Assembly: GCA_021613535.1 (NCBI GenBank)
Contig: CP075492.1
Location: forward strand, 8,556,001-8,620,000
DNA: 64,000 nt
Source of the DNA: Adineta vaga
Lineage: Eukaryota > Animalia > Rotifera
Reading direction: 5' to 3'
Below the pieces are notes generated by a model, which did not search any database, was not told the DNA's origin, and saw only the letters and a program-made list of their open reading frames with translations. Each line of letters begins with the position of its first letter. Within the stretch, counting starts at the first letter, position 1. This document shows positions 13,251 through 24,859 of this stretch, one piece after another. The translations under genes and the position numbers were made by a program.

Positions 13251-14468
13251 ATGTATAATTCTGTTTTAAAATCTTCTTCAAATATTTCTTTGGTCTCCGA
13301 TGAATCCATGTCACCTGGAATAACAAACAACAGTCTCCTACCAGTTATACGCAATGATTATAGTCTTGATAGCGTCTGTTGTACAAAACGAACGTTACAT
13401 ACATTTTCACATATGTGGATTGTAGAAAATTTTTCATCGTATTTGGAAGATCCTGAACCGATTATATGTTTATCATCATCACCATTTAGTCCCGTATCAG
13501 GCTGTAGTGTCGCTACTCAATGGCGTCTAGTTTGTTATCCTAAAGGCAATTATGGTGCATCGTCAAATTATATGTCAATTTTTCTTGAATATATTAAAGG
13601 TGAACGTGACATCAAAGCTAAAGCTGAATATTCACTTGTTAATCGTAAGTGTGAATTAACAGAAATGCGTAAAGATGCACAATTTTCAATTTATAAATGT
13701 GGAAATTCACGTGGATTTATCAATTATGTTAAATTTGATACATTAACATTAGTCGAGAATGAAACACTCGATGAAGATAAATTGAAAATCTATGTTCGAA
13801 TAACAATTATGGATGATGCCATTACAGAAGAAACAAAATATCAAGAATTTGATGATGGTGAAAATATTAATTTTACAACACGTGGTTTCGAAAGTCTTGT
13901 CAAAGATTTTACACAACTTTTAATTCAATCAACAACAAAAATGAGTGATATTACCATAAGAGTTACTGTACCATTTAATGATGATATTGATGAATCCATA
14001 GAATCACCGGTTATTTTTCATGCACATAAATTAATTCTTGCTGCTCGTTCACCTGTCTTTGCAGCCATGTTTTCTAATCGTACTTTGGAAAATACGACTA
14101 ATACAATTGATATTAATGATTTACATCCAAATACAATTCAATCAATGCTTGAATATATTTATACAGGCAAAGTAACTGATATTAAAAAATCCACAGTTGA
14201 ATTGTATCGTTGTGCTGATAAATATCAATTAGAAGATTTACGTTTACAAGCTGAAATGGCTTTAATGAATTCTTTATCCATTGATACAAGTGCAGAAATC
14301 TTATTACTTGCTGATCAACATCATTCAGAAGATTTGAAATCACGTGTTATTCAATTTATTGTCAGTGGTAATCTCAAGGCTATCACTCAAACAGATGGCT
14401 GGCATAGATATGTTGCTTGTACTCCTGATCTAGTTACTGAAGTAATCCAAGCAACAGCTATCGAATAA
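13251..14468 (+). CDS. Speckle-type POZ (MATH-BTB) Cullin-3 adaptor, intronless CDS
   Basis: MATH domain (WIVENFS...WRLVCYPKG...YMSIFL), BTB domain (HAHKLILAARSPVFAAMF...YIYTG) and BACK-like end. Confidence 0.92.
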   Translation: MYNSVLKSSSNISLVSDESMSPGITNNSLLPVIRNDYSLDSVCCTKRTLHTFSHMWIVENFSSYLEDPEPIICLSSSPFSPVSGCSVATQWRLVCYPKGNYGASSNYMSIFLEYIKGERDIKAKAEYSLVNRKCELTEMRKDAQFSIYKCGNSRGFINYVKFDTLTLVENETLDEDKLKIYVRITIMDDAITEETKYQEFDDGENINFTTRGFESLVKDFTQLLIQSTTKMSDITIRVTVPFNDDIDESIESPVIFHAHKLILAARSPVFAAMFSNRTLENTTNTIDINDLHPNTIQSMLEYIYTGKVTDIKKSTVELYRCADKYQLEDLRLQAEMALMNSLSIDTSAEILLLADQHHSEDLKSRVIQFIVSGNLKAITQTDGWHRYVACTPDLVTEVIQATAIE

Positions 14469-14788
14469 ATGATGACTCGATCAAATTTTTCTTTTCTTTT
14501 TTTTATAACAACACCTAGTCACCTGATTTTATACTCATCAAGGACAGACTATCGATGTAAAGATTTCAAGTTTTTTTTTGCTTCTTTTTTATACTATAAA
14601 TTTCTGTTTTTTTATTTTGTTTCTCCTTCAGTTTTAATTATTTGAACATATGTCGAGAGAAATGAAGCGATAAAGGACATTTTTTTTGTTTGTCATTTCT
14701 TATATTAATGATGTCCCCTGTAAGAAGGTGACTAGTACATTAATCGAACTTCACACTATCATGATTGAATAAATAAGAAAGAAGATAT

Positions 14789-17033
14789 TCAACAAGTCAG
14801 ATTGGTAACAGCTGTCGAATTTGAAGATTGTCGAGTTTTCTTGAGAAGATCTTGAGTAGGATGAGAATCAGAATCTTATTAGAATAAGAAATGATAAGAT
14901 TGAAGTAACAGATTTTTAAAAAAAGAAGTATACCTGACGTTGAAGATGGAAGTAGATCTTGTTCTTCAAGATAAGCAATTGGTGAAGTTAACAAAGAAGG
15001 TGATTGTGATGGATCTTCCATTTCTAGATCGGTATTGTCTGAATGATTTCTTATTTTTGTTGATTGATGATATTCAAGTGTATTTTTTGTTGCAGTTGTT
15101 GAATATTGTATCGTGTTAGGTTTCGTAGCCGTAATATCCATGCTAGATGTTCTAGTTATCGAAGGCGATGGCGAAGATGGCCAAGTCGTTGGAAATTTAA
15201 AGACTTGACTGGAAGATAATTGTTGTAAATGATCAGTACTATTAACAAATTGGGATGTCTTGGCATCAGGACTCGGTGTTCGATCAAGCAAATCGATAAG
15301 TGAACTGGCTTGTTCTAATTCAAAAGAAAAATGAACTCCATTGTTTTCAATGATTTTATATTCGACAAAAATAATAGACTTACCAGATTTTGGAGTCATT
15401 TTACATTGCACAAGTCGTTTTTCTAGTTCTGCTATACGATTTGCCAATATTCTTGAAAAAAAAACATTATACAAATGAAAAAAACATCTTTATGGTATTT
15501 GTTTTTGTAACATACTTATTAATCTTTCTTTGATGAACAATAGTCACATTTTTATCTTTAAGATTTTCAAATAAAGCTTCGGCAATTGCTCGTAAATCGT
15601 TCTCAATTTCTGGCGTGTTTGGAAGAATATAACTTTGGTTGATCAAACTTCGCACTAAGTTAGGTGAATACTATCAATTTAAAAACGAATTCTTTTATAA
15701 CCTTTTACCTTGTTTATAAGTCAATATACTTCCTGAAGATTGTATTTTTTCTGATTGATGTGATTGTAAAAGTTCCTAAATTAGATTTCTTTTGAAATCT
15801 AGTTTAAATCATGCAAATTACCTTATATTTTGTTGCATTAGCAATGGCAAGATCTTTCTCTCGAGTTATTTCATTCAATTTCTCTTTGAAATATCTACAA
15901 GAGAAGCAAATGAAGGATTTGTTTTCGTATGAAAAACTTCTTACTGATTTTCAGATAGAATAAGTTCAATATCAACCAATGAATTTTCATTACCACTAAA
16001 CATTTTGTTTAGTTTATTAGATTTATTTTTGAAAGAATCACGTTCAATTTCAAGTTCTTCTTTTTGGCAAACGAGTAATTTTAGATCATTTTCAAGTTGA
16101 AGAATCTATACATTCAAATAAACAAAAGAAAACAAGAATTAAATATTCACAAACTCGTTCATTTGCTTGTTCTAAACGTTCTAATAAAGTCGTTTCATTA
16201 TCATTCTCAACCTGATGATTATCATTCCAACTACAATATCTTTTTTGACGAAAAATCTACAAACAAGTCAAGAAAAGAATATCTCCAATTCAATTAAATA
16301 TAAATCTCTTCTTACCGATAAATCACCTTTAACATCATCAAGTTCACGTGTAAGTTCATCGACTTTTGTTTGTAAAACTTCTTTTTCATCTTGAACAGTT
16401 TTTAAAGCTGTTTTCAACAATAAATTGTGGACTAGATTGAGAAATAATTATTGAGTAAAAGTAATAGATACAAAAAAAAAAACAACAACTAACATTTGAT
16501 TAGTAAAAACGAAAACATGCATCTAGCATGCTTTATTAACCTGAACAAACCTCCTTTTCTTTCAATGAAATAGGATCAATCTAACTAGGTTGGATGAAGA
16601 TAATTCTTTTTTTGTTTTGTTTTATGAATCATTGAGATATACTTACATCATTCGGATGCTCATAGATAGTTTGAGTTGGATACACTGCATTTAGAGGTTC
16701 AATCTAAATGAAAGTTGTTCACATGTTACATAAAGATATGATCTGATAAGATGATTTTTTTTCTATTGAAAAATATACTACCTTCTTTGTCGTTTGTTTC
16801 TTTAGTTGTACATATTTTTCTTGTAAACTATCAGCAAGTGATTTAAATTGATTTCGTTCATATTTTAACGTATCCAGTTCATTAATTAATATGGCAAATG
16901 CTTTTGATTTACTCTCTAATCTCTTTTGTAAAACTTGTATCTAAATCGAAGGAGAGTAACATTGATTATGAGAAATTTTAATTTCATTTACTTCATTGTT
17001 CAATGAGTCAATCTGTTGTTGATTATCAGTCAT
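14789..17033 (-). CDS. CCDC149: Coiled-coil domain-containing protein 149-like
   Basis: LQKRLESKSKAFAILINELDTLKYERNQFKSLADSL and ENLKDKNVTIVHQRKINKILANRIAELEKRL match CCDC149 conserved blocks. Multi-exon; ends NLTC*. Confidence 0.8.
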
Positions 17034-17166
17034 ATCATTTATACTGAAAAATAAGAGATTGTTTTAATAACTGTTGAAAAAAAAAGAACATTACGTTAGA
17101 AAGAAATTCTTTATAGCAAGGAGAATAATATTATCACAGAAATGAAAAAAGAAATTGTTCATTTAT

Positions 17167-18573
17167 TTAAAATTCGTTCTTTGTCTTCTCTCGTTTCACT
17201 CGAATACGTTCCAAAATGAAATCCAATTTTTGTTGAACTTTTTTACATCCTGATACGGAATAAAGTAAAGTTTCTGGTGGTGCGAATTCAATTAAATCCA
17301 GTACATTATTAACAATATCATTATCAGATTTATTGTAATCGTATTCTTCACTTTCGCGAGCTAAATCAAGTTGTCGTTGAATACAAGTACGAACATGAGA
17401 ATGTTCAAGTGGAAGAAAGGGCACAAAGAATGTTACTAAATGACGATTAATTAAAGAAGCATGCCATAATCCACCTGAAAAATGAAGAAAAATATTACAA
17501 ATTTCGATACGTAAATTTGAAAATAGACCTGCTTCACTAAATGCAGCATTTGCAAGTGCTCGTTGAAATTCTGTTATATTATAATCACGTCGTTCAATAG
17601 ATGAAAAATGATTGTTTTGAGCAATAATATTAATATCTTTACCACCGGTATTACTACAGAAGATAAATATAAAATTAATTCAATAGAAAACTTTTCATTT
17701 GATACCTCAAAAAGATAAATATTGTTTTGCGAAAATCGATTGGCTGTGCGTATGTGGGTGTATGAAAATCAATGTAATATAAAATAGTTTCTAATAATTG
17801 AACAGGCATTTTATCGACTTCATCAAAAACAAAAGTTGCATGTTGACAAGCACTTGTTGCTTTTTCAATATCTTTTTTAATTCGATCCTATTTATAAAAA
17901 AGCAAAAAGTTGAATAGTTAAAAATCAATCGTAAGTAAATGATATTCATCTACTTATACCATCAACATACCTTATATTCTTGAAGATGCTCCTTTGTCAT
18001 TATGCATAAAATCACGTGATGCAACATACAATCGAGCGTAACTACTCTTATAACCTTTTCTGTACAGACTTTCAACAATATGTTTTGCAACGAAATTCTT
18101 TCCTAAGTGAAATTAAAAAAAACACAATCATATTTAAATACACGCACGTAAGTTCAACTAATCATATATTATTCATCAGAAAAACTAAGAAACAGATACA
18201 AACTATACTCTCTTAACTGTAGAACTTCCTTTCATCATATATGAGCACATCCTGAAGATTGATTGGATCATTTTCGATACACTTACCTGTGCCAGTACTT
18301 CCATGTAACGACAATACCAGTGCTTTGGATGGATTTTCAGTGTTTATATGTGAACTGATCGAATTGAGTATAAGATCATGTGCAAGTGGTTGACCCATCA
18401 AATGATCTTTTAATCGTAGATCAAGTTCTTCAGGAAAAAAAAAGAAGCAAATATATAGTGTGTCATTGCATTATTTCCTATTAAAATTCACCTGTCATAT
18501 TTTTCGGTACCCACTGTTTCGAACAACATTCCCATATACAAAATATATGAAAGAGACTAGCTAGATCTACCAT
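17167..18573 (-). CDS. Torsin-family AAA+ ATPase
   Basis: WECC...LMGQPLAH, Walker A LHGSTGTGKNF, Walker B FVFDEVDKM, IFLSNTGG, FVPFLPLE and sensor-II SGCKKV. Confidence 0.92.
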
Positions 18574-18708
18574 ACTCTGTTCTGTTTTAAATCTTAAATA
18601 AAAGACAGACAATGAATTTTTTTATAGACATATAAAAAAAATTGGGATAATTAATTAGAAACAAAACAAAAACACATGAAAGAGAATGAATATGAATAAA
18701 AATAATCA

Positions 18709-20705
18709 TTATTGAGAAGTATTGGTAAGATCATGTTCAGCATTATTAGCATCGGTAATAAATTGCATCAAACAACCCACTGCACTAAAATAACCCTAGA
18801 ACAAATAGTATGGAAGAAATAAGAATATAGAGAAGAATTCAGGTTTATTTTCATACTTCATGCTCAAGAAATATTGCTTTTATTTTACTATCAGACCAGT
18901 AATCCATAGCATAAGCCAATATCCTCATAGATAAATCATTAATACGTAAGAAACTACCACTGAATAATACACGATCGACATTCTACAAAGAAAATGAAAA
19001 TCAGTACAGTAGTGGAGTGTGAATAGATTTCTTTTTACCTCAGTACGAGCGCACATCATTGAAATCGAACCAATATTGTTGAGAACAGTAACTAAAGTTG
19101 CCCGAGCTAAATCAGCTTTTGATGCTTGTTCGCGTTTTTCGAGTAAATTCATATGACCAAAACTAAATGGAATAAAATAAAATTATAGACGAGTTTGATT
19201 TTAGTTATTGCAAGTTCACGATCAGAACGATGCAAATCATGTTTATCTTGAATCCTATACATCTGTAATATGAGAGTCTTTTATGAACTAGTTCATATCA
19301 ATACAATATTAGATTGACAACCCAAGTTATTTATGAAGTTGGAGAAGCCGTCAAGCAAAATCTGATACAACTATCGTCATGCAATGCAAGTTTGCCACGA
19401 TCGTGTTTGATCATATAGTATTCTATGCGGTAATCATTCAACTTTTCTTTTAAGAATTATAGCAATAAGCATATTTAAGATGAATAAATTTACAAGTATT
19501 CGTATTTAGCCAGCTCTTTTTCTACGTAATATAACTTGCCTATATTCAACAGGTATTTGTTTGCAAAGCTCACCATTATCACTAGAGAGATTTCAATAGG
19601 GGATAGAGCACACTTTCGAAATTCTAACATTCATTCATGTGTACAGCTGTATTCAATTTACCTGCTTGCTACAATATGACCGGGCAAACCAAATCTTTCA
19701 TAATCACCGCCATATATGTCCTTAACTAATTTATCAACCTATGAAAAGCATTAACAAAATATCTGCTGTCTAAATTTTCAATATTACCTTTGTACTATCT
19801 CCTTCCGAAGCTAGTTGAATAGCTTCATCATAAGTAGAACATCCTGTTAGTAAACAACATAGCCCTAAAAATGTACCACCACCTATGCTGCAATCCAAAA
19901 CAAAAACAACAAGTCAATATTCATCGTAAAATATTCTTTTCATTCTTACCTTGTACCAGTTATACGTCGATAACTACTTTCTGATTCAACATATAAAATA
20001 CTGATACCACTTCCAATATTAACAAGAAGAAATGGATGTTTCATATCAAATGTAAATGGATTTTTATTTGGATTCGCATCATTCTGTGGTTCTTCGTAAT
20101 AAAAACATTCATTTGAATTTAATTTACTTATATAACATAAACCTTTCATTAATGTATCAAGTTCATCACATTTACTCCAACTAATTTTTAATTTCTAAAA
20201 CAAATAACTCATTCGTTTTTGTTTCATATTCTCAAAGTAATATTTACTTCAACAATATCTTTTTCAAATTTATAAGCACCACCACCTGTGGCAAAGATTT
20301 TAAATGTTAACGTATGTAAATTTCTCGTTACACATGAGTCAATAAAATTCGTCATTTTCGATGTTGGAAAACGAATAAAATGAAGATTTCCTTGTCGACC
20401 ACCTAACTCAATTTTTTTCAATTCCAATGCATCATCACGTACACCTTCCTGTCCATAGGCACGATTCGATGTTAAGTAACGACGAATATTCATTAAAATT
20501 TCACCTTCACTTCGAATTTCATCAGCCGTTAAGTCAAGGGGTTCAAAATAGACAAGTTTAACAAGTGTTCCACCAATATCAATACCAAACCAAGGAAAAA
20601 CTAATTAAAAAAAGAAATGCATTCATATGATGCATCCGATCATCATATTCTATAATTACCTGGAAATGCTATTTCTTCACTACCTGATGTAACACTGGTT
20701 GCCAT
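18709..20705 (-). CDS. PANK: Type II pantothenate kinase (fumble/PANK)
   Basis: [52 protein letters not shown] and KHEGYFSAVG. Confidence 0.95.
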
Positions 20706-21019
20706 CTTTAATTGAGGAATTTTCGCAGATTTGGAATGTTCAATACTGCTTGACCTAAAATGAGAAAAGGTCATTAAGTTAAACATCTATCTGCCATAGA
20801 GAGTTTCGTAAAGAATTCACTATATTGTAGAACGTATCTATGAAAAATTTCAACAGTCGGACATATATCTTATATGATATATACTAGAAAAAAAGAAGTC
20901 ATTTCTCATTGGTAACCTCGATAAATATTCTCTGTGAAGCTTTCATTTCAAGATATGTCATAGAAAAGCAACGTTGATCCAATGACGGAGCATCGGCCCA
21001 TTTGTGAAATAATACCGGC

Positions 21020-21027
21020 TGACGTCA
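21020..21027. promoter_or_regulatory. Perfect CRE palindrome TGACGTCA in the putative PANK promoter
   Basis: TGACGTCA lies in a relatively GC-richer patch about 315 nt upstream of the PANK ATG. Confidence 0.3.
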
Positions 21028-21330
21028 ACGTTTTATTTCTAACGATAAGGATATTGTATGCTTTTTAAATCGACAAAAAAAGACGCATAAAAAGAAACGA
21101 ATGCCTGTTTTTAGTTTTTTTAACTTAAAAATATTCGAAATGTACCTTTTCCTGTCCATTTTAGTCCCACATGTTCCAAGTCATTCATTTATCGAACAAC
21201 ATCTGAAATAAGCGTATAGATAAAGAATATGTTTTTATAATAAATTTTTTTGTTTGTTTTTTTTTGAATATACAATATATTAAGACAAGAAAAAAAATCG
21301 TATTTCATAACTATCTGACACAATTATCTT

Positions 21331-21904
21331 TTATTCAACTACAGATCCATTATTTTCATCTTCTTCATCATTATCATTATCATTATCGTTATTTTCTGAT
21401 GATGCTTCAGGTTGATTTTGTTGTTTCTTAGCTGTTTCCTCTTTCTTTTTACGTGTTTGTTCTTGATAATCTATACAAGATGGAGATATATTTATTCAAA
21501 TTAATTTAATCGTATATTATTATCGTACCTTTCAATGCTTCTTGTAAAGGTTCAACAAGCATGTCGAATTGATTCGATTGTAAAGCTTTGAACATATCTT
21601 GAACTGTCACTGTTTTACGTTTTGCATTTGCAGCATATTGATTAGCACTAAAGATAAGAACTTAGAGGTTTGATTTGTAATAATTAAAAAATTATCTACG
21701 TCGAACTAATGTAAAGAATAAATGTTAGTGCAGCACGTGACATCGCTATTCGAGCTTCTTTGGAAATTGTTGGTGATTCTCCCAACTAAAATGAAAAAAA
21801 TAAATTAAATGAAAATCTATATAAAAAAAAATACTTACAGCTTCATTCATCAATCGAGTAATAACTGCATTAGGAAATGTTAGATCATCAACTTCATCTG
21901 ACAT
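21331..21904 (-). CDS. POLE3: DNA polymerase epsilon subunit 3 / CHRAC17 histone-fold protein
   Basis: MSDEVDDLTFPNAVITRLMNEA...ISKEARIAMSRAA...AKRKTVTVQDMFKAL followed by an acidic tail; 4 exons. Confidence 0.88.
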
Positions 21905-21987
21905 GATTATCTACAAAAAAAAGTAAGACACATTTGTCAGTACAAAAATCAATCTTGAAATTAAGATCGATATCAAAACAGAATAGA

Positions 21988-23250
21988 TTAATTAGTTTCA
22001 ATTTTATTTTTATCAACATTCAAATCTAAAAATGAATAGAATTCGAATTAGTATATGATATTGTTTTCAATTCAATAATTTACCTTCTTCTGTCTCTTTT
22101 TTGATAACCCAACCTTTACGTTCAGGAATATGTGTTTTCAATGTTTGTTTCCAATCATTCGTTATCATATACGAAAGTAGAATATCAAATACTAGATGAA
22201 ACAGATTTATAAATAGTCATTTTATATGAACTAATAGTACCTTGATTTATTGAAAGAATTTGATTGAATGTTCCACCATCAATAGAATGTTCCATGTGCG
22301 TTTCAATTGGCAATCTATAACATGTGATATTCTTATCCTGACATACTTGAAATGTCATATTCTGAAATGTATTTGAATTATTAAGATGAATTTTATTCAC
22401 CAAATAGATCTTACTTTTCGAACACTTTCATCGACAAGACCACCAATAACAAATACATTTTGTTCGGTAATTTCAGTTAATACTTTATCTCCATTTGGAC
22501 TTAAATAAATCAAACGTTCAGATGGATAATATTCATGAATTTCTTTATCGCTGAGAATGATCTATAATACGATTTTGTAATAGAATATGAGAAAGAAAAA
22601 GAATAAACTATTACTGGATAATTATCGAAACCACTATTAACACGGCGACATTCCTGTGCTAATAAACTCTCATTTGACCAATTGGTTAAAGTAAGTCGAA
22701 CGGGCTTAGTTGCTCGACGATTTGAACTATAACATCGTCCAATTTGTCGAGCAAGACTAGCGATTTCCTAGACATATCAAAAAGAATTATTGCTTTCATT
22801 AATTCATTTTTCAAGCAATCGCATGAACACTAACCTTACCCGACATAGATTGATTGTATGCACAATCAATACATATCACAGGTGCTGTTTCTTGTTGATT
22901 AATTTCTGCTAAACGTTCATTCGCAGCACGTTTGAACATTTTTCCAGTTGTTGATATCACTTGTTCAGTTAAAACTATTTCAAAGAAAAAGACTTATGAA
23001 CATGAAAAGACAAAGAGAAGAATAAAGAATAATTACTTTCCGAAGAGTCGGATGGTAGTATTATTGATGAAGGATGTTTGGAAGATGCATGAGATTTTTT
23101 CTTCTTACGTGTTTGCTTGCGTTGTTGACAAATACGTTCATAACGTAATCGTTTTTTAGCACTGCGTGGTAAACGTTTTGGTTTTGTTGATTCAACAGTA
23201 GTCGATTCGTTTTCATTGTTCAGAACAAGAGAAGTTAACTCAGATGACAT
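21988..23250 (-). CDS. TRMT10: tRNA m1G9 methyltransferase TRMT10 (B-like)
   Basis: ICIDCAYNQSM...IASLARQIGRCYSSNRR, IYLSPNG, VFVIGGLVDES, RLPI, ILSINQ and HIPERKGW. Confidence 0.88.
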
Positions 23251-24859
23251 AGTTTGACAATAAATCTAGAAAAAAAGTCATAAATATAAATATAAAATTG
23301 TATTTATTTGAAAAGCGAACAAAAGTAAAGTATTAGTATTAATAGTATTAATATTAACTAACTACTAACACCCAGACTCTTTTGGATTGGACATAGTGTG
23401 ACGAAAGTTTTTATAGAAGAGATGTCGCCCATATTAAGACACTTCTTCTTATAGATGGAGGGCACAATTGTATTAGTATTGCAGATATCGAACGAGTCAT
23501 CACTCGCAAAGTTGATAATGTTGTTTAGGTAGTATAACTTAAGTTATTTAACGAAAAACAAATTTTCTTCATTCTTTAAATAGATTAGGAATCATACAAT
23601 TGAATTGCGTCATTCATTAGTAACTTTTATCCTAGTTGAATAATAGATTGTAATAGAACAGTTTTTTAATAGGTTTTTCTACTTAAATATTCACATGATT
23701 ACGAACGAAATCTGTGCATGTCATTATTCTAGCATGAAACGGCATGAATTTCCTCATCTTACTCAACTTTTTCTCGCAACTGTGCATATTGACTATGTGG
23801 AACTATTTCTTTCTTGCTTGAATATTCGTCTATCTAGCCTTAATGTACTTCCGATTGAATATGAACAACTACTGACTGTTACAAAACACTTGAAAAGAGA
23901 TAAAATACGTATAAATTGTGCAAAAATTAAGGACATTTTTTTTCTACGATGAAATGCATCTAGTACAATCAAAAAACTGTTATCTCTATTTTCTTTCTTT
24001 CAAGAAAAATGTGTTATTTGTGCATAATTATTTGTTGAGTATATTAATTAAAGGAAAGAATAGTATTTGTTTGAAAATGATCACATTCTCTGAAGAATAT
24101 TTGATGTTTTACGTATTATTCACATGGTCTGCGAGATCAATGATTTTAATTTTCAAATAGCCGAGAGAAGAGAGAAATTGATTCGTTTGAATGTTTGTGA
24201 AGAAGTAGAATCGCATCTACTGTTATGAATATCAGGCTTATCGATTTAGAGTATGCGTGTATTATCTTATTCCTCATCCTCAAGATGGTTTACATTCTAT
24301 ATATATATATATACTATTTTATTCGAAAAATATTGATATATGCACGACAAAATACATCGAAGTTAAAATAATAATTGTTGGATGAATTGTTTCTCATTTC
24401 CTATTCAGTTGTGCGTGCGCATTTCTACTACAATGAATAATTTATATCATGGATGTTTCTGATTTCATGTCTTCTTTCTACGGATCATAACATAAAACAT
24501 ATTATGCTACAGCAGATCATTAAACTTTGAAAAGCATCTTCTTCTTTTATTGTTCAGCTTTATCTTAACGTAGGTAGAAAATATCTCGTGACAGTATATT
24601 CAACAGGATTATTTCTATGTAAAACATGCATAGTCGATCATCCACTGAACTAAACATAGTTTACATCAGACTATGTCGATAATAACATATTTTATAAATA
24701 CAAAATTCAACAAAAAAAATCACTATACATATTTTTATAGAATATAGATTACTTGATTTGTTATAAATTGATGTGTTATTGAAAATACAGTATGATTCAG
24801 ATTCTATTCATAATTGAATCACAAACACGTAGATCGATGTAATCAATTTAAGAACATGT

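Follow-up and report, generated by a model that had tools for sequence, protein, structure and literature searches.

Do bdelloid rotifers transcribe neighbouring genes as operons and resolve the products by spliced-leader (SL) trans-splicing? The question is raised by a run of closely spaced genes on the minus strand of contig C3 of the Adineta vaga assembly (100.8 Mb, six contigs), of which we analysed positions 8556001-8620000, a stretch of 64,000 nucleotides (nt) that we refer to as the window and in which all coordinates are counted unless another contig is named. To our knowledge, monogonont rotifers seem to be without an SL. Bdelloids possess SL trans-splicing, as Pouchkina-Stantcheva and Tunnacliffe reportedly found in 2005. 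A first-pass annotation, made from the sequence alone, had proposed that three genes of the window, PANK, torsin and CCDC149, form a trans-spliced operon. Our analysis extends the run to five unrelated genes, TRMT10 > POLE3-like > PANK > torsin > CCDC149, places the rotifer SL at the acceptor of the last of them, and makes polycistronic, SL-resolved transcription of the run plausible, a reading to which we give even chances. From the acceptors and RNA ends described below we infer SL addition at torsin, PANK and POLE3, as well as co-transcription of the genes.

A run of five genes on one strand

Gene identities were obtained by running Pfam on each exon, protein searches were likewise made exon by exon, and the RNA data comprise cDNA contigs assembled from four runs (X1, X2, X5 and X6) belonging to three studies. 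PANK/Fumble, torsin and CCDC149 are genuine, spliced and expressed genes. The coordinates and shared orientation originally given for them are correct throughout, and so are the identities, since Pfam returns Fumble (E 2e-10 to 5e-15 on the PANK exons), Torsin and TOR1A_C (E 7e-13 and 2e-10 on the torsin exons) and CC149. RNA contig joints cover the full set of eight introns in PANK (the first one plus seven separating exons 2-9) and four of the five torsin introns, with torsin intron 1 (18491-18428) deduced from two loose ends that read the adjoining exons; most introns at the locus are 46-64 nt long. The two genes further upstream are collinear with Rotaria socialis genes annotated PF27710 TRM10 and PF00808, respectively. 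The features of the run, and the gene that closes it, are as follows.

21988..23267, minus strand: TRMT10-like gene, first in the run; AG 23267-23266, ATG 23250, stop 21990-21988
21905..21987, minus strand: spacer between TRMT10 and POLE3-like, 83 nt; polypyrimidine tract and AG 21912-21911, 7 nt before the ATG
21331..21904, minus strand: POLE3-like histone-fold gene (CBFD_NFYB_HMF); ATG 21904, stop 21333-21331
21203..21330, minus strand: spacer between POLE3-like and PANK exon 1, 127 nt (21330-21204); AG 21204-21203; TATAAAA 21239-21233
21146..21202, minus strand: PANK non-coding exon 1, 57 nt; RNA joint in X1, X2 and X6
20755..21145, minus strand: PANK intron 1, 391 nt, GT-AG; holds the TGACGTCA 'CRE' (cAMP response element) at 21027-21020
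18709..20754, minus strand: PANK (Fumble) exons 2-9; ATG 20705, stop 18711-18709; Pfam Fumble on three exons
18574..18708, minus strand: spacer between PANK and torsin, 135 nt; AATTAA 18656-18651, TATAAAA 18626-18620, AG 18594-18593
17167..18573, minus strand: torsin, six exons; ATG 18573, stop 17169-17167
17034..17166, minus strand: spacer between torsin and CCDC149, 133 nt; AATAAA 17167-17162 overlapping the torsin stop, AG 17045-17044
14789..17043, minus strand: CCDC149; ATG 17033, stop 14791-14789; Pfam CC149 E 7e-9
13251..14468, plus strand: SPOP-like MATH-BTB gene, convergent, closing the run; Pfam MATH_2, BTB and BACK

The extension beyond PANK follows from the structure of its 5' end. 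The first-pass annotation had left PANK about 600 nt of free upstream space with a CRE promoter, a proposal that the RNA contradicts: PANK contigs of X1, X2 and X6 splice from 21146 to 20754 (the joint is recorded as 20752/21144, with 391 nt skipped and GT-AG ends), joining the gene to a non-coding exon 1 at 21202-21146. The TGACGTCA 'CRE' is intronic because the RNA contigs splice out the 391-nt intron in which it lies. We rejected it as the PANK promoter on this ground and because the 200 nt 3' of the motif lack RNA coverage, depth being zero over 20800-20999 in all four runs. A counterpart of exon 1 is present in A. vaga copy B, in R. socialis and in the environmental contig L029, and its acceptor, together with a CATATTCTTTAT block, is kept in R. 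socialis, L029 and the A. vaga duplicate copy. PANK exon 1 is close behind the POLE3-like gene, which is itself close behind TRMT10, and the genes therefore make up one five-gene run.

The gaps within this run measure 83, 127 (to PANK exon 1), 135 and 133 nt, all below the 250 bp operon cut-off. Divergent, promoter-bearing gaps in the same block span 1.2-2.9 kb in R. socialis and ~2.6 kb in A. vaga, and the free space 5' of TRMT10 amounts to ~1.6 kb. The RNA contigs of the POLE3-like gene extend at least to 21298 in X1 and at least to 21271 in X2, as taken from depth bins.

The spliced leader and the ends of the RNAs

With the rotifer SL sequence taken from PMC3795323 Table 1, the genome was found to hold 42 intact SL RNA genes that share one 22-nt exon, with a GTAAAT donor and ~85 nt of conserved body behind it in each gene. 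These genes mostly stand as head-to-head pairs ~155 bp apart, with large clusters on contig C5, for example at C5:9884356-9925969. The window contains no SL RNA gene and, on the strand of the run, no SL-like sequence.

The SL itself is visible at CCDC149. In the CCDC149 contig of run X2 the loose end past 17045 reads CTTACCAAG on the RNA strand, nine letters that together with the genomic AG are the last 11 nt of the rotifer SL, and the CCDC149 exon starts at 17043, as predicted. The probability of such a nine-letter match by chance is about 4e-6, and the sole other copy of this 9-mer in the window lies on the opposite strand, 18 kb away. The hallmarks of rotifer SL trans-splicing are accordingly found together, namely the 23-nt leader, ending in ...ACTTACCAAGAG, spliced to a 3' acceptor, and donor-bearing SL genes in the genome. 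The X1 contig of CCDC149 stops exactly at the AG (17045). The SL addition originally proposed is thus borne out at the CCDC149 acceptor; for the torsin acceptor the backing is indirect and consists of a contig end at 18594 and a conserved TTGAAG|AT, and for PANK exon 1 and POLE3 it consists of acceptors that score highly and are conserved. Record 9 of the X2 torsin contigs spans exactly 18492-18594, halting on the A of the predicted AG, which is the point where SL-joined RNA and genome would diverge, and no SL letters were seen at this end.

The 3' ends of the upstream messages lie just ahead of these acceptors. Contig ends serve here as proxies for mRNA 3' ends, no poly(A) tails having been seen in them. 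A 192-nt torsin contig (17140-17331) has the same end, 17140, in X1, X2 and X5; it is 22 nt past AATAAA and just 5' of a conserved CTGTGAT that also occurs near the torsin 3' end in R. socialis and in locus L037. With torsin RNA ending at 17140, ~94 nt are therefore left to the CCDC149 acceptor. PANK contigs extend no further than 18632 (X1), which lies 19 nt past AATTAA and 38 nt 5' of the torsin AG. At both boundaries, then, the contig ends place the upstream 3' end just before the downstream trans-splice site. By depth-bin arithmetic, the deepest run has no coverage of 17046-17139 or of 18595-18631.

Acceptors and spacers

Each gene of the run begins behind a 3' splice site. We scored these sites with a matrix built on 16 RNA-confirmed introns of PANK, torsin and CCDC149, which have RNA joints with GT-AG ends except for torsin intron 1 with its two loose ends, and expressed each score as a percentile among all 2955 minus-strand AGs of the window.

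G at 23266, minus strand: TRMT10 acceptor, 99th percentile
G at 21911, minus strand: POLE3-like acceptor, 99th percentile
G at 21203, minus strand: PANK exon 1 acceptor, 94th percentile
G at 18593, minus strand: torsin acceptor, 97th percentile
G at 17044, minus strand: CCDC149 acceptor, 90th percentile

All five score inside the range of true introns, which upholds the polypyrimidine-AG acceptors that had been read from the sequence ahead of torsin and CCDC149. The TRMT10 acceptor AG, 15 nt 5' of its ATG, is kept in R. socialis, where the POLE3 junction AG|ATAATCATG is also identical. The description of the spacers as U-rich holds as well, the coding-strand T fraction being 0.52 in the 135-nt spacer and 0.48 in the 133-nt spacer.

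A usable cis donor is absent from three of the four spacers; the fourth has GTAATG at 17094. It could be supposed that the acceptors belong to cis-spliced introns of the 5' untranslated region (UTR), or are served by donors in the upstream gene; a 51-nt intron from GTAATG 17094 to 17044 had been raised as a caveat for CCDC149. Its length fits the local range of 46-64 nt, and 11 RNA joints beyond those listed leave room for a minor cis-spliced isoform. Against such introns, the X2 contig at 17045 carries SL letters rather than letters of an upstream exon, X1 and X5 have no coverage of 17046-17139 by depth arithmetic, and the other three spacers are without any cis donor. The 51-nt intron is unseen among the RNA joints listed, and neither R. 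socialis nor L037 conserves its donor. We consider cis-splicing a very improbable explanation of the acceptors.

A CTATAAA..AATT motif, noted initially in both spacers, does occur in both. We rejected it as a shared signal: the A. vaga duplicate copy, R. socialis, L037 and others lack it, its distance to the acceptors is unequal (33 vs 71 nt), and the full motif has three further matches in the window, all at unrelated sites. TATAAA falls in both spacers in 4.4% of shuffles, with 0.13 expected per spacer in DNA of 30% GC. A scan for bacterial-type promoters and terminators gave chance-level results and is irrelevant to A. vaga.

Conservation in a duplicate copy and in other bdelloids

An old duplicate on A. 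vaga contig C6 has PANK > torsin > CCDC149 in unchanged order, with amino-acid identities between C3 and C6 of 80, 52 and 65% in single exons of PANK, torsin and CCDC149, respectively, and with spacers of 249 nt (PANK > torsin) and 84 nt (torsin > CCDC149). In other rotifers, where the locus was anchored by the intron-free SPOP-like neighbour and by single exons, all five genes recur in R. socialis in the same order and on the same strand, with gaps of 94, 360, 201 and 144 nt, of which the 360-nt gap is measured from coding sequence to coding sequence across PANK exon 1. The order of the three-gene core is preserved in R. socialis, A. steineri and the loci L028, L031 and L037, the sources of the core including an ENA bdelloid assembly, three JGI environmental contigs and a Logan contig. 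Partial runs comprise PANK > torsin only in R. magnacalcarata and L029, and torsin > CCDC149 only in L034.

Across orthologous and duplicate loci the spacer between PANK and torsin measures 135-330 nt and that between torsin and CCDC149 82-153 nt, Didymodactylos carnosus aside. Five duplicate-copy loci have CCDC149; in four of them the latter spacer measures 82-100 nt, and in A. steineri it is ~120 nt. In duplicate-copy loci the CCDC149 acceptor sits 6 nt before the ATG. Spacers of 82-100 nt cannot accommodate a promoter and an outron in addition to 3' end signals and a splice site. Spacer sequence diverges between copies and species while the acceptors stay conserved; TTGAAG|AT ahead of torsin is kept in nine loci that include both duplicate copies and several genera.

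The comparison also brought out variants of the run. In two environmental Adineta-like contigs (L029 3770-4040 and L039 660-760) the CCDC149 coding region is lost and the SPOP 3' region comes immediately after torsin. L028 (13900-16420), the duplicate-type locus of the ENA bdelloid, has two tandem torsins between PANK and CCDC149. The Logan contig L037 (SRR10663368, 2847 nt) has 53% GC, against ~30% in A. vaga, and bears the same run at 83-88% protein identity. Annotations fuse torsin with CCDC149 in A. steineri (L025 11690-18187, 852 aa) and in D. carnosus (L035 323-5068, 625 aa); the short gap probably caused an error of gene prediction in both.

Operon or separate transcription units

Several observations support an operon. 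The in-run gaps of ~0.1 kb are tenfold below the promoter-bearing gaps and the 1.6 kb ahead of TRMT10; the acceptors are orphans, with an SL junction shown at one of them and 38-94 nt from the 3' ends to the acceptors; the duplicate lineage has spacers of 82-100 nt; and the core recurs with its order and short spacing in both A. vaga duplicates and in other bdelloids. The working definition used for chaetognath operons, gaps <250 bp and at least one SL-bearing gene (PMC12460157), describes this cluster. In our working model, a one-leader SL operon as in Ciona, Oikopleura and chaetognaths, RNA polymerase II would initiate upstream of TRMT10, or at minimum upstream of torsin; each upstream mRNA would be cleaved and polyadenylated 20-80 nt past its stop; and the 23-nt rotifer SL would be trans-spliced to the following acceptor, some tens of bases downstream, to give capped monocistronic mRNAs. 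We hold tentatively, with confidence just under even, that bdelloids have true SL-resolved operons, that this one is a five-gene unit, and that its core predates the C3/C6 duplication and has been kept across Adinetidae and Philodinidae.

Several observations weigh against the operon, the first group of them concerning the RNA. The SL is visible in one contig of one run, as nine unaligned letters only. An SL is by itself no proof of an operon, because more than 50% of bdelloid mRNAs carry one according to PMC1925144, which cites Pouchkina-Stantcheva and Tunnacliffe 2005. None of the four assemblies has an RNA contig that bridges a spacer; introns, for example the 184-nt torsin intron, are equally uncovered, so that the lack of bridging contigs is uninformative rather than negative. 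When metagenomes were scanned with the profile of a torsin exon, all matches were genomic bdelloid contigs with introns or, in two cases, unrelated torsins that lack introns; no SL-bearing or two-gene transcript was among them, and the contigs examined after a word search with the last torsin exon for RNA-derived contigs were all genomic. Contig depth was tried as a measure of co-expression and set aside: the ratios among the three genes stay within ~2-4 fold over the four runs, depth is unusable for this purpose, and it was given zero weight.

Further objections lend themselves to a different explanation, in which the genes are separate compact units with the SL optional and with small promoters of their own, located in the spacers or immediately 5' of them and perhaps reaching into the end of the gene ahead. 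The SL might take the place of a short outron, as at CCDC149, or transcription might start at the CAG/AAG as an initiator, the tight packing being a matter of genome compaction. TATAAAA stands at 18626-18620, 32 nt before the torsin contig end 18594, and again at 21239-21233, 35 nt before the PANK exon 1 AG, where R. socialis has TATTAAAAAAA 30 nt before the same AG; TATAAAG stands at 17115-17109, 70 nt before the CCDC149 acceptor, and R. socialis has TATTAAA at a similar distance. The torsin and PANK contigs stop at or near the exon starts without SL letters at 22-59x depth, and comparable acceptors also start genes that have no close upstream neighbour, namely TRMT10, duplicate-copy PANK and D. 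carnosus torsin. The frequency of the SL, on more than half of bdelloid mRNAs (PMC1925144), fits compact units too. On the other side, TATAAA is common in 30% GC DNA, and most other species, like the duplicate copy, retain the polypyrimidine tract and AG but not the TATA-like boxes. The 82-100 nt spacers of the duplicate lineage have no space for a promoter and an outron, and a competent SL acceptor 38-94 nt past the cleavage site would be offered for trans-splicing by any read-through polymerase anyway. We regard separate units as a distinctly possible account, at somewhat less than even probability.

The comparative record holds the last points that count against an operon. The whole 21 kb, opposite-strand neighbours included, is collinear between A. 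vaga and R. socialis, and conserved order alone does not single out the run because of this. In the early-branching D. carnosus, no PANK gene lies within 10 kb of torsin, and 731 nt separate torsin from the adjacent CCDC149; SPOP is elsewhere in this species, and the torsin gene begins behind an AG located 5 nt ahead of the ATG. In some environmental Adineta-like lineages the run no longer includes CCDC149. One could conclude that the genes are packed by chance and share no regulation, their adjacency being retained through the high microsynteny of bdelloids, as the collinear block with genes on both strands, the loss of CCDC149 and the missing PANK link in D. carnosus would all allow. Chance packing has to contend, however, with four successive gaps of ~0.1 kb beside promoter-bearing gaps of 1.2-2.9 kb, and with the persistence of short gaps in both old duplicates and across genera despite diverging spacer sequence, and we consider it unlikely.

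Further observations at the locus

Several features of the individual genes deserve record in their own right. CCDC149 contains a 30-nt in-frame cassette exon (16580-16551) that is included in X2 and X6 and skipped in X1. A two-codon upstream open reading frame (uORF) at 17038-17030 overlaps its ATG at 17033 in the arrangement ATGnnATGA, as does its equivalent at L021 5332-5340; the overlapping uORF recurs in A. vaga copy B, A. steineri B, L028, L034 and the GC-rich L037, and R. socialis has an in-frame ATG in its place. In torsin exon 3, at 17991-17992, the reference AAAGGAGCAT has one G more than the RNA contigs of all four runs, which show two in-frame alleles, AAAGAGCAT and AAAGAACAT; the reference frame meets TAA at 17974-17972, and the extra G reflects an assembly indel or, alternatively, a null allele.

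Inside the 499-nt PANK intron, RNA contigs (19192-19569) reach a depth of 3-8, compared with ~50 for exons, and the other introns have none; they could represent an unannotated transcript or a retained intron. An Rfam scan of 14000-24600 gave no match, and therefore no known small RNA accounts for them. The 320 nt between the stops of CCDC149 and SPOP (14469-14788) contain long blocks conserved between Adineta and Rotaria. They are most likely a strongly constrained SPOP 3' UTR, a reading based on the persistence of the blocks where CCDC149 is deleted. Two X1 contigs leave for unrelated sequence at 18454 (torsin intron 1) and at 16115, and a contig of depth 2.6 links 16132 to 18434; these are probably assembly chimeras.

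Comparison with known operons and implications

The run resembles the single-leader operons of Ciona, Oikopleura, chaetognaths and flatworms in that unrelated genes of housekeeping type lie on one strand with gaps well below 250 bp, and in that one SL family is received at an acceptor just 5' of the ATG, as seen here at CCDC149. It differs from Ciona, where gaps are near zero, in the 38-94 nt that separate the 3' end from the acceptor, and in that co-transcription of the present genes is what we infer. The ~100-nt U-rich spacer, with an upstream 3' end closely followed by SL addition, recalls the SL2-type operons of C. elegans. Unlike those, CCDC149 bears the common rotifer SL, and we found no second leader, other leader sequences not having been searched, nor did we see an Ur-element-like conserved block in the rotifer spacers. 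The orphan acceptors 6-31 nt before the ATG, at which an SL replaces the 5' end, are also reminiscent of SL1-type outron trans-splicing in nematodes; SL1-type monocistronic genes, in contrast, need a promoter and an outron of their own, for which spacers of 82-135 nt leave little or no room.

The literature searched, in full text (PMC7986045), contained no report of operons in Rotifera, and a table of 2008 gives the rotifer operon entry as 'not determined' (PMC2481426). The present locus alone adds one more candidate and is not yet proof. If SL-resolved operons do exist in bdelloids, Rotifera would join nematodes, tunicates, chaetognaths and flatworms as operon-bearing animals, and bdelloids and monogononts would form a close pair of lineages in which the origin of operons could be studied. 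Gene predictions that fuse neighbours would then need SL-aware correction, and ideas that connect operons with recovery from dormancy would become testable in an animal that survives desiccation.

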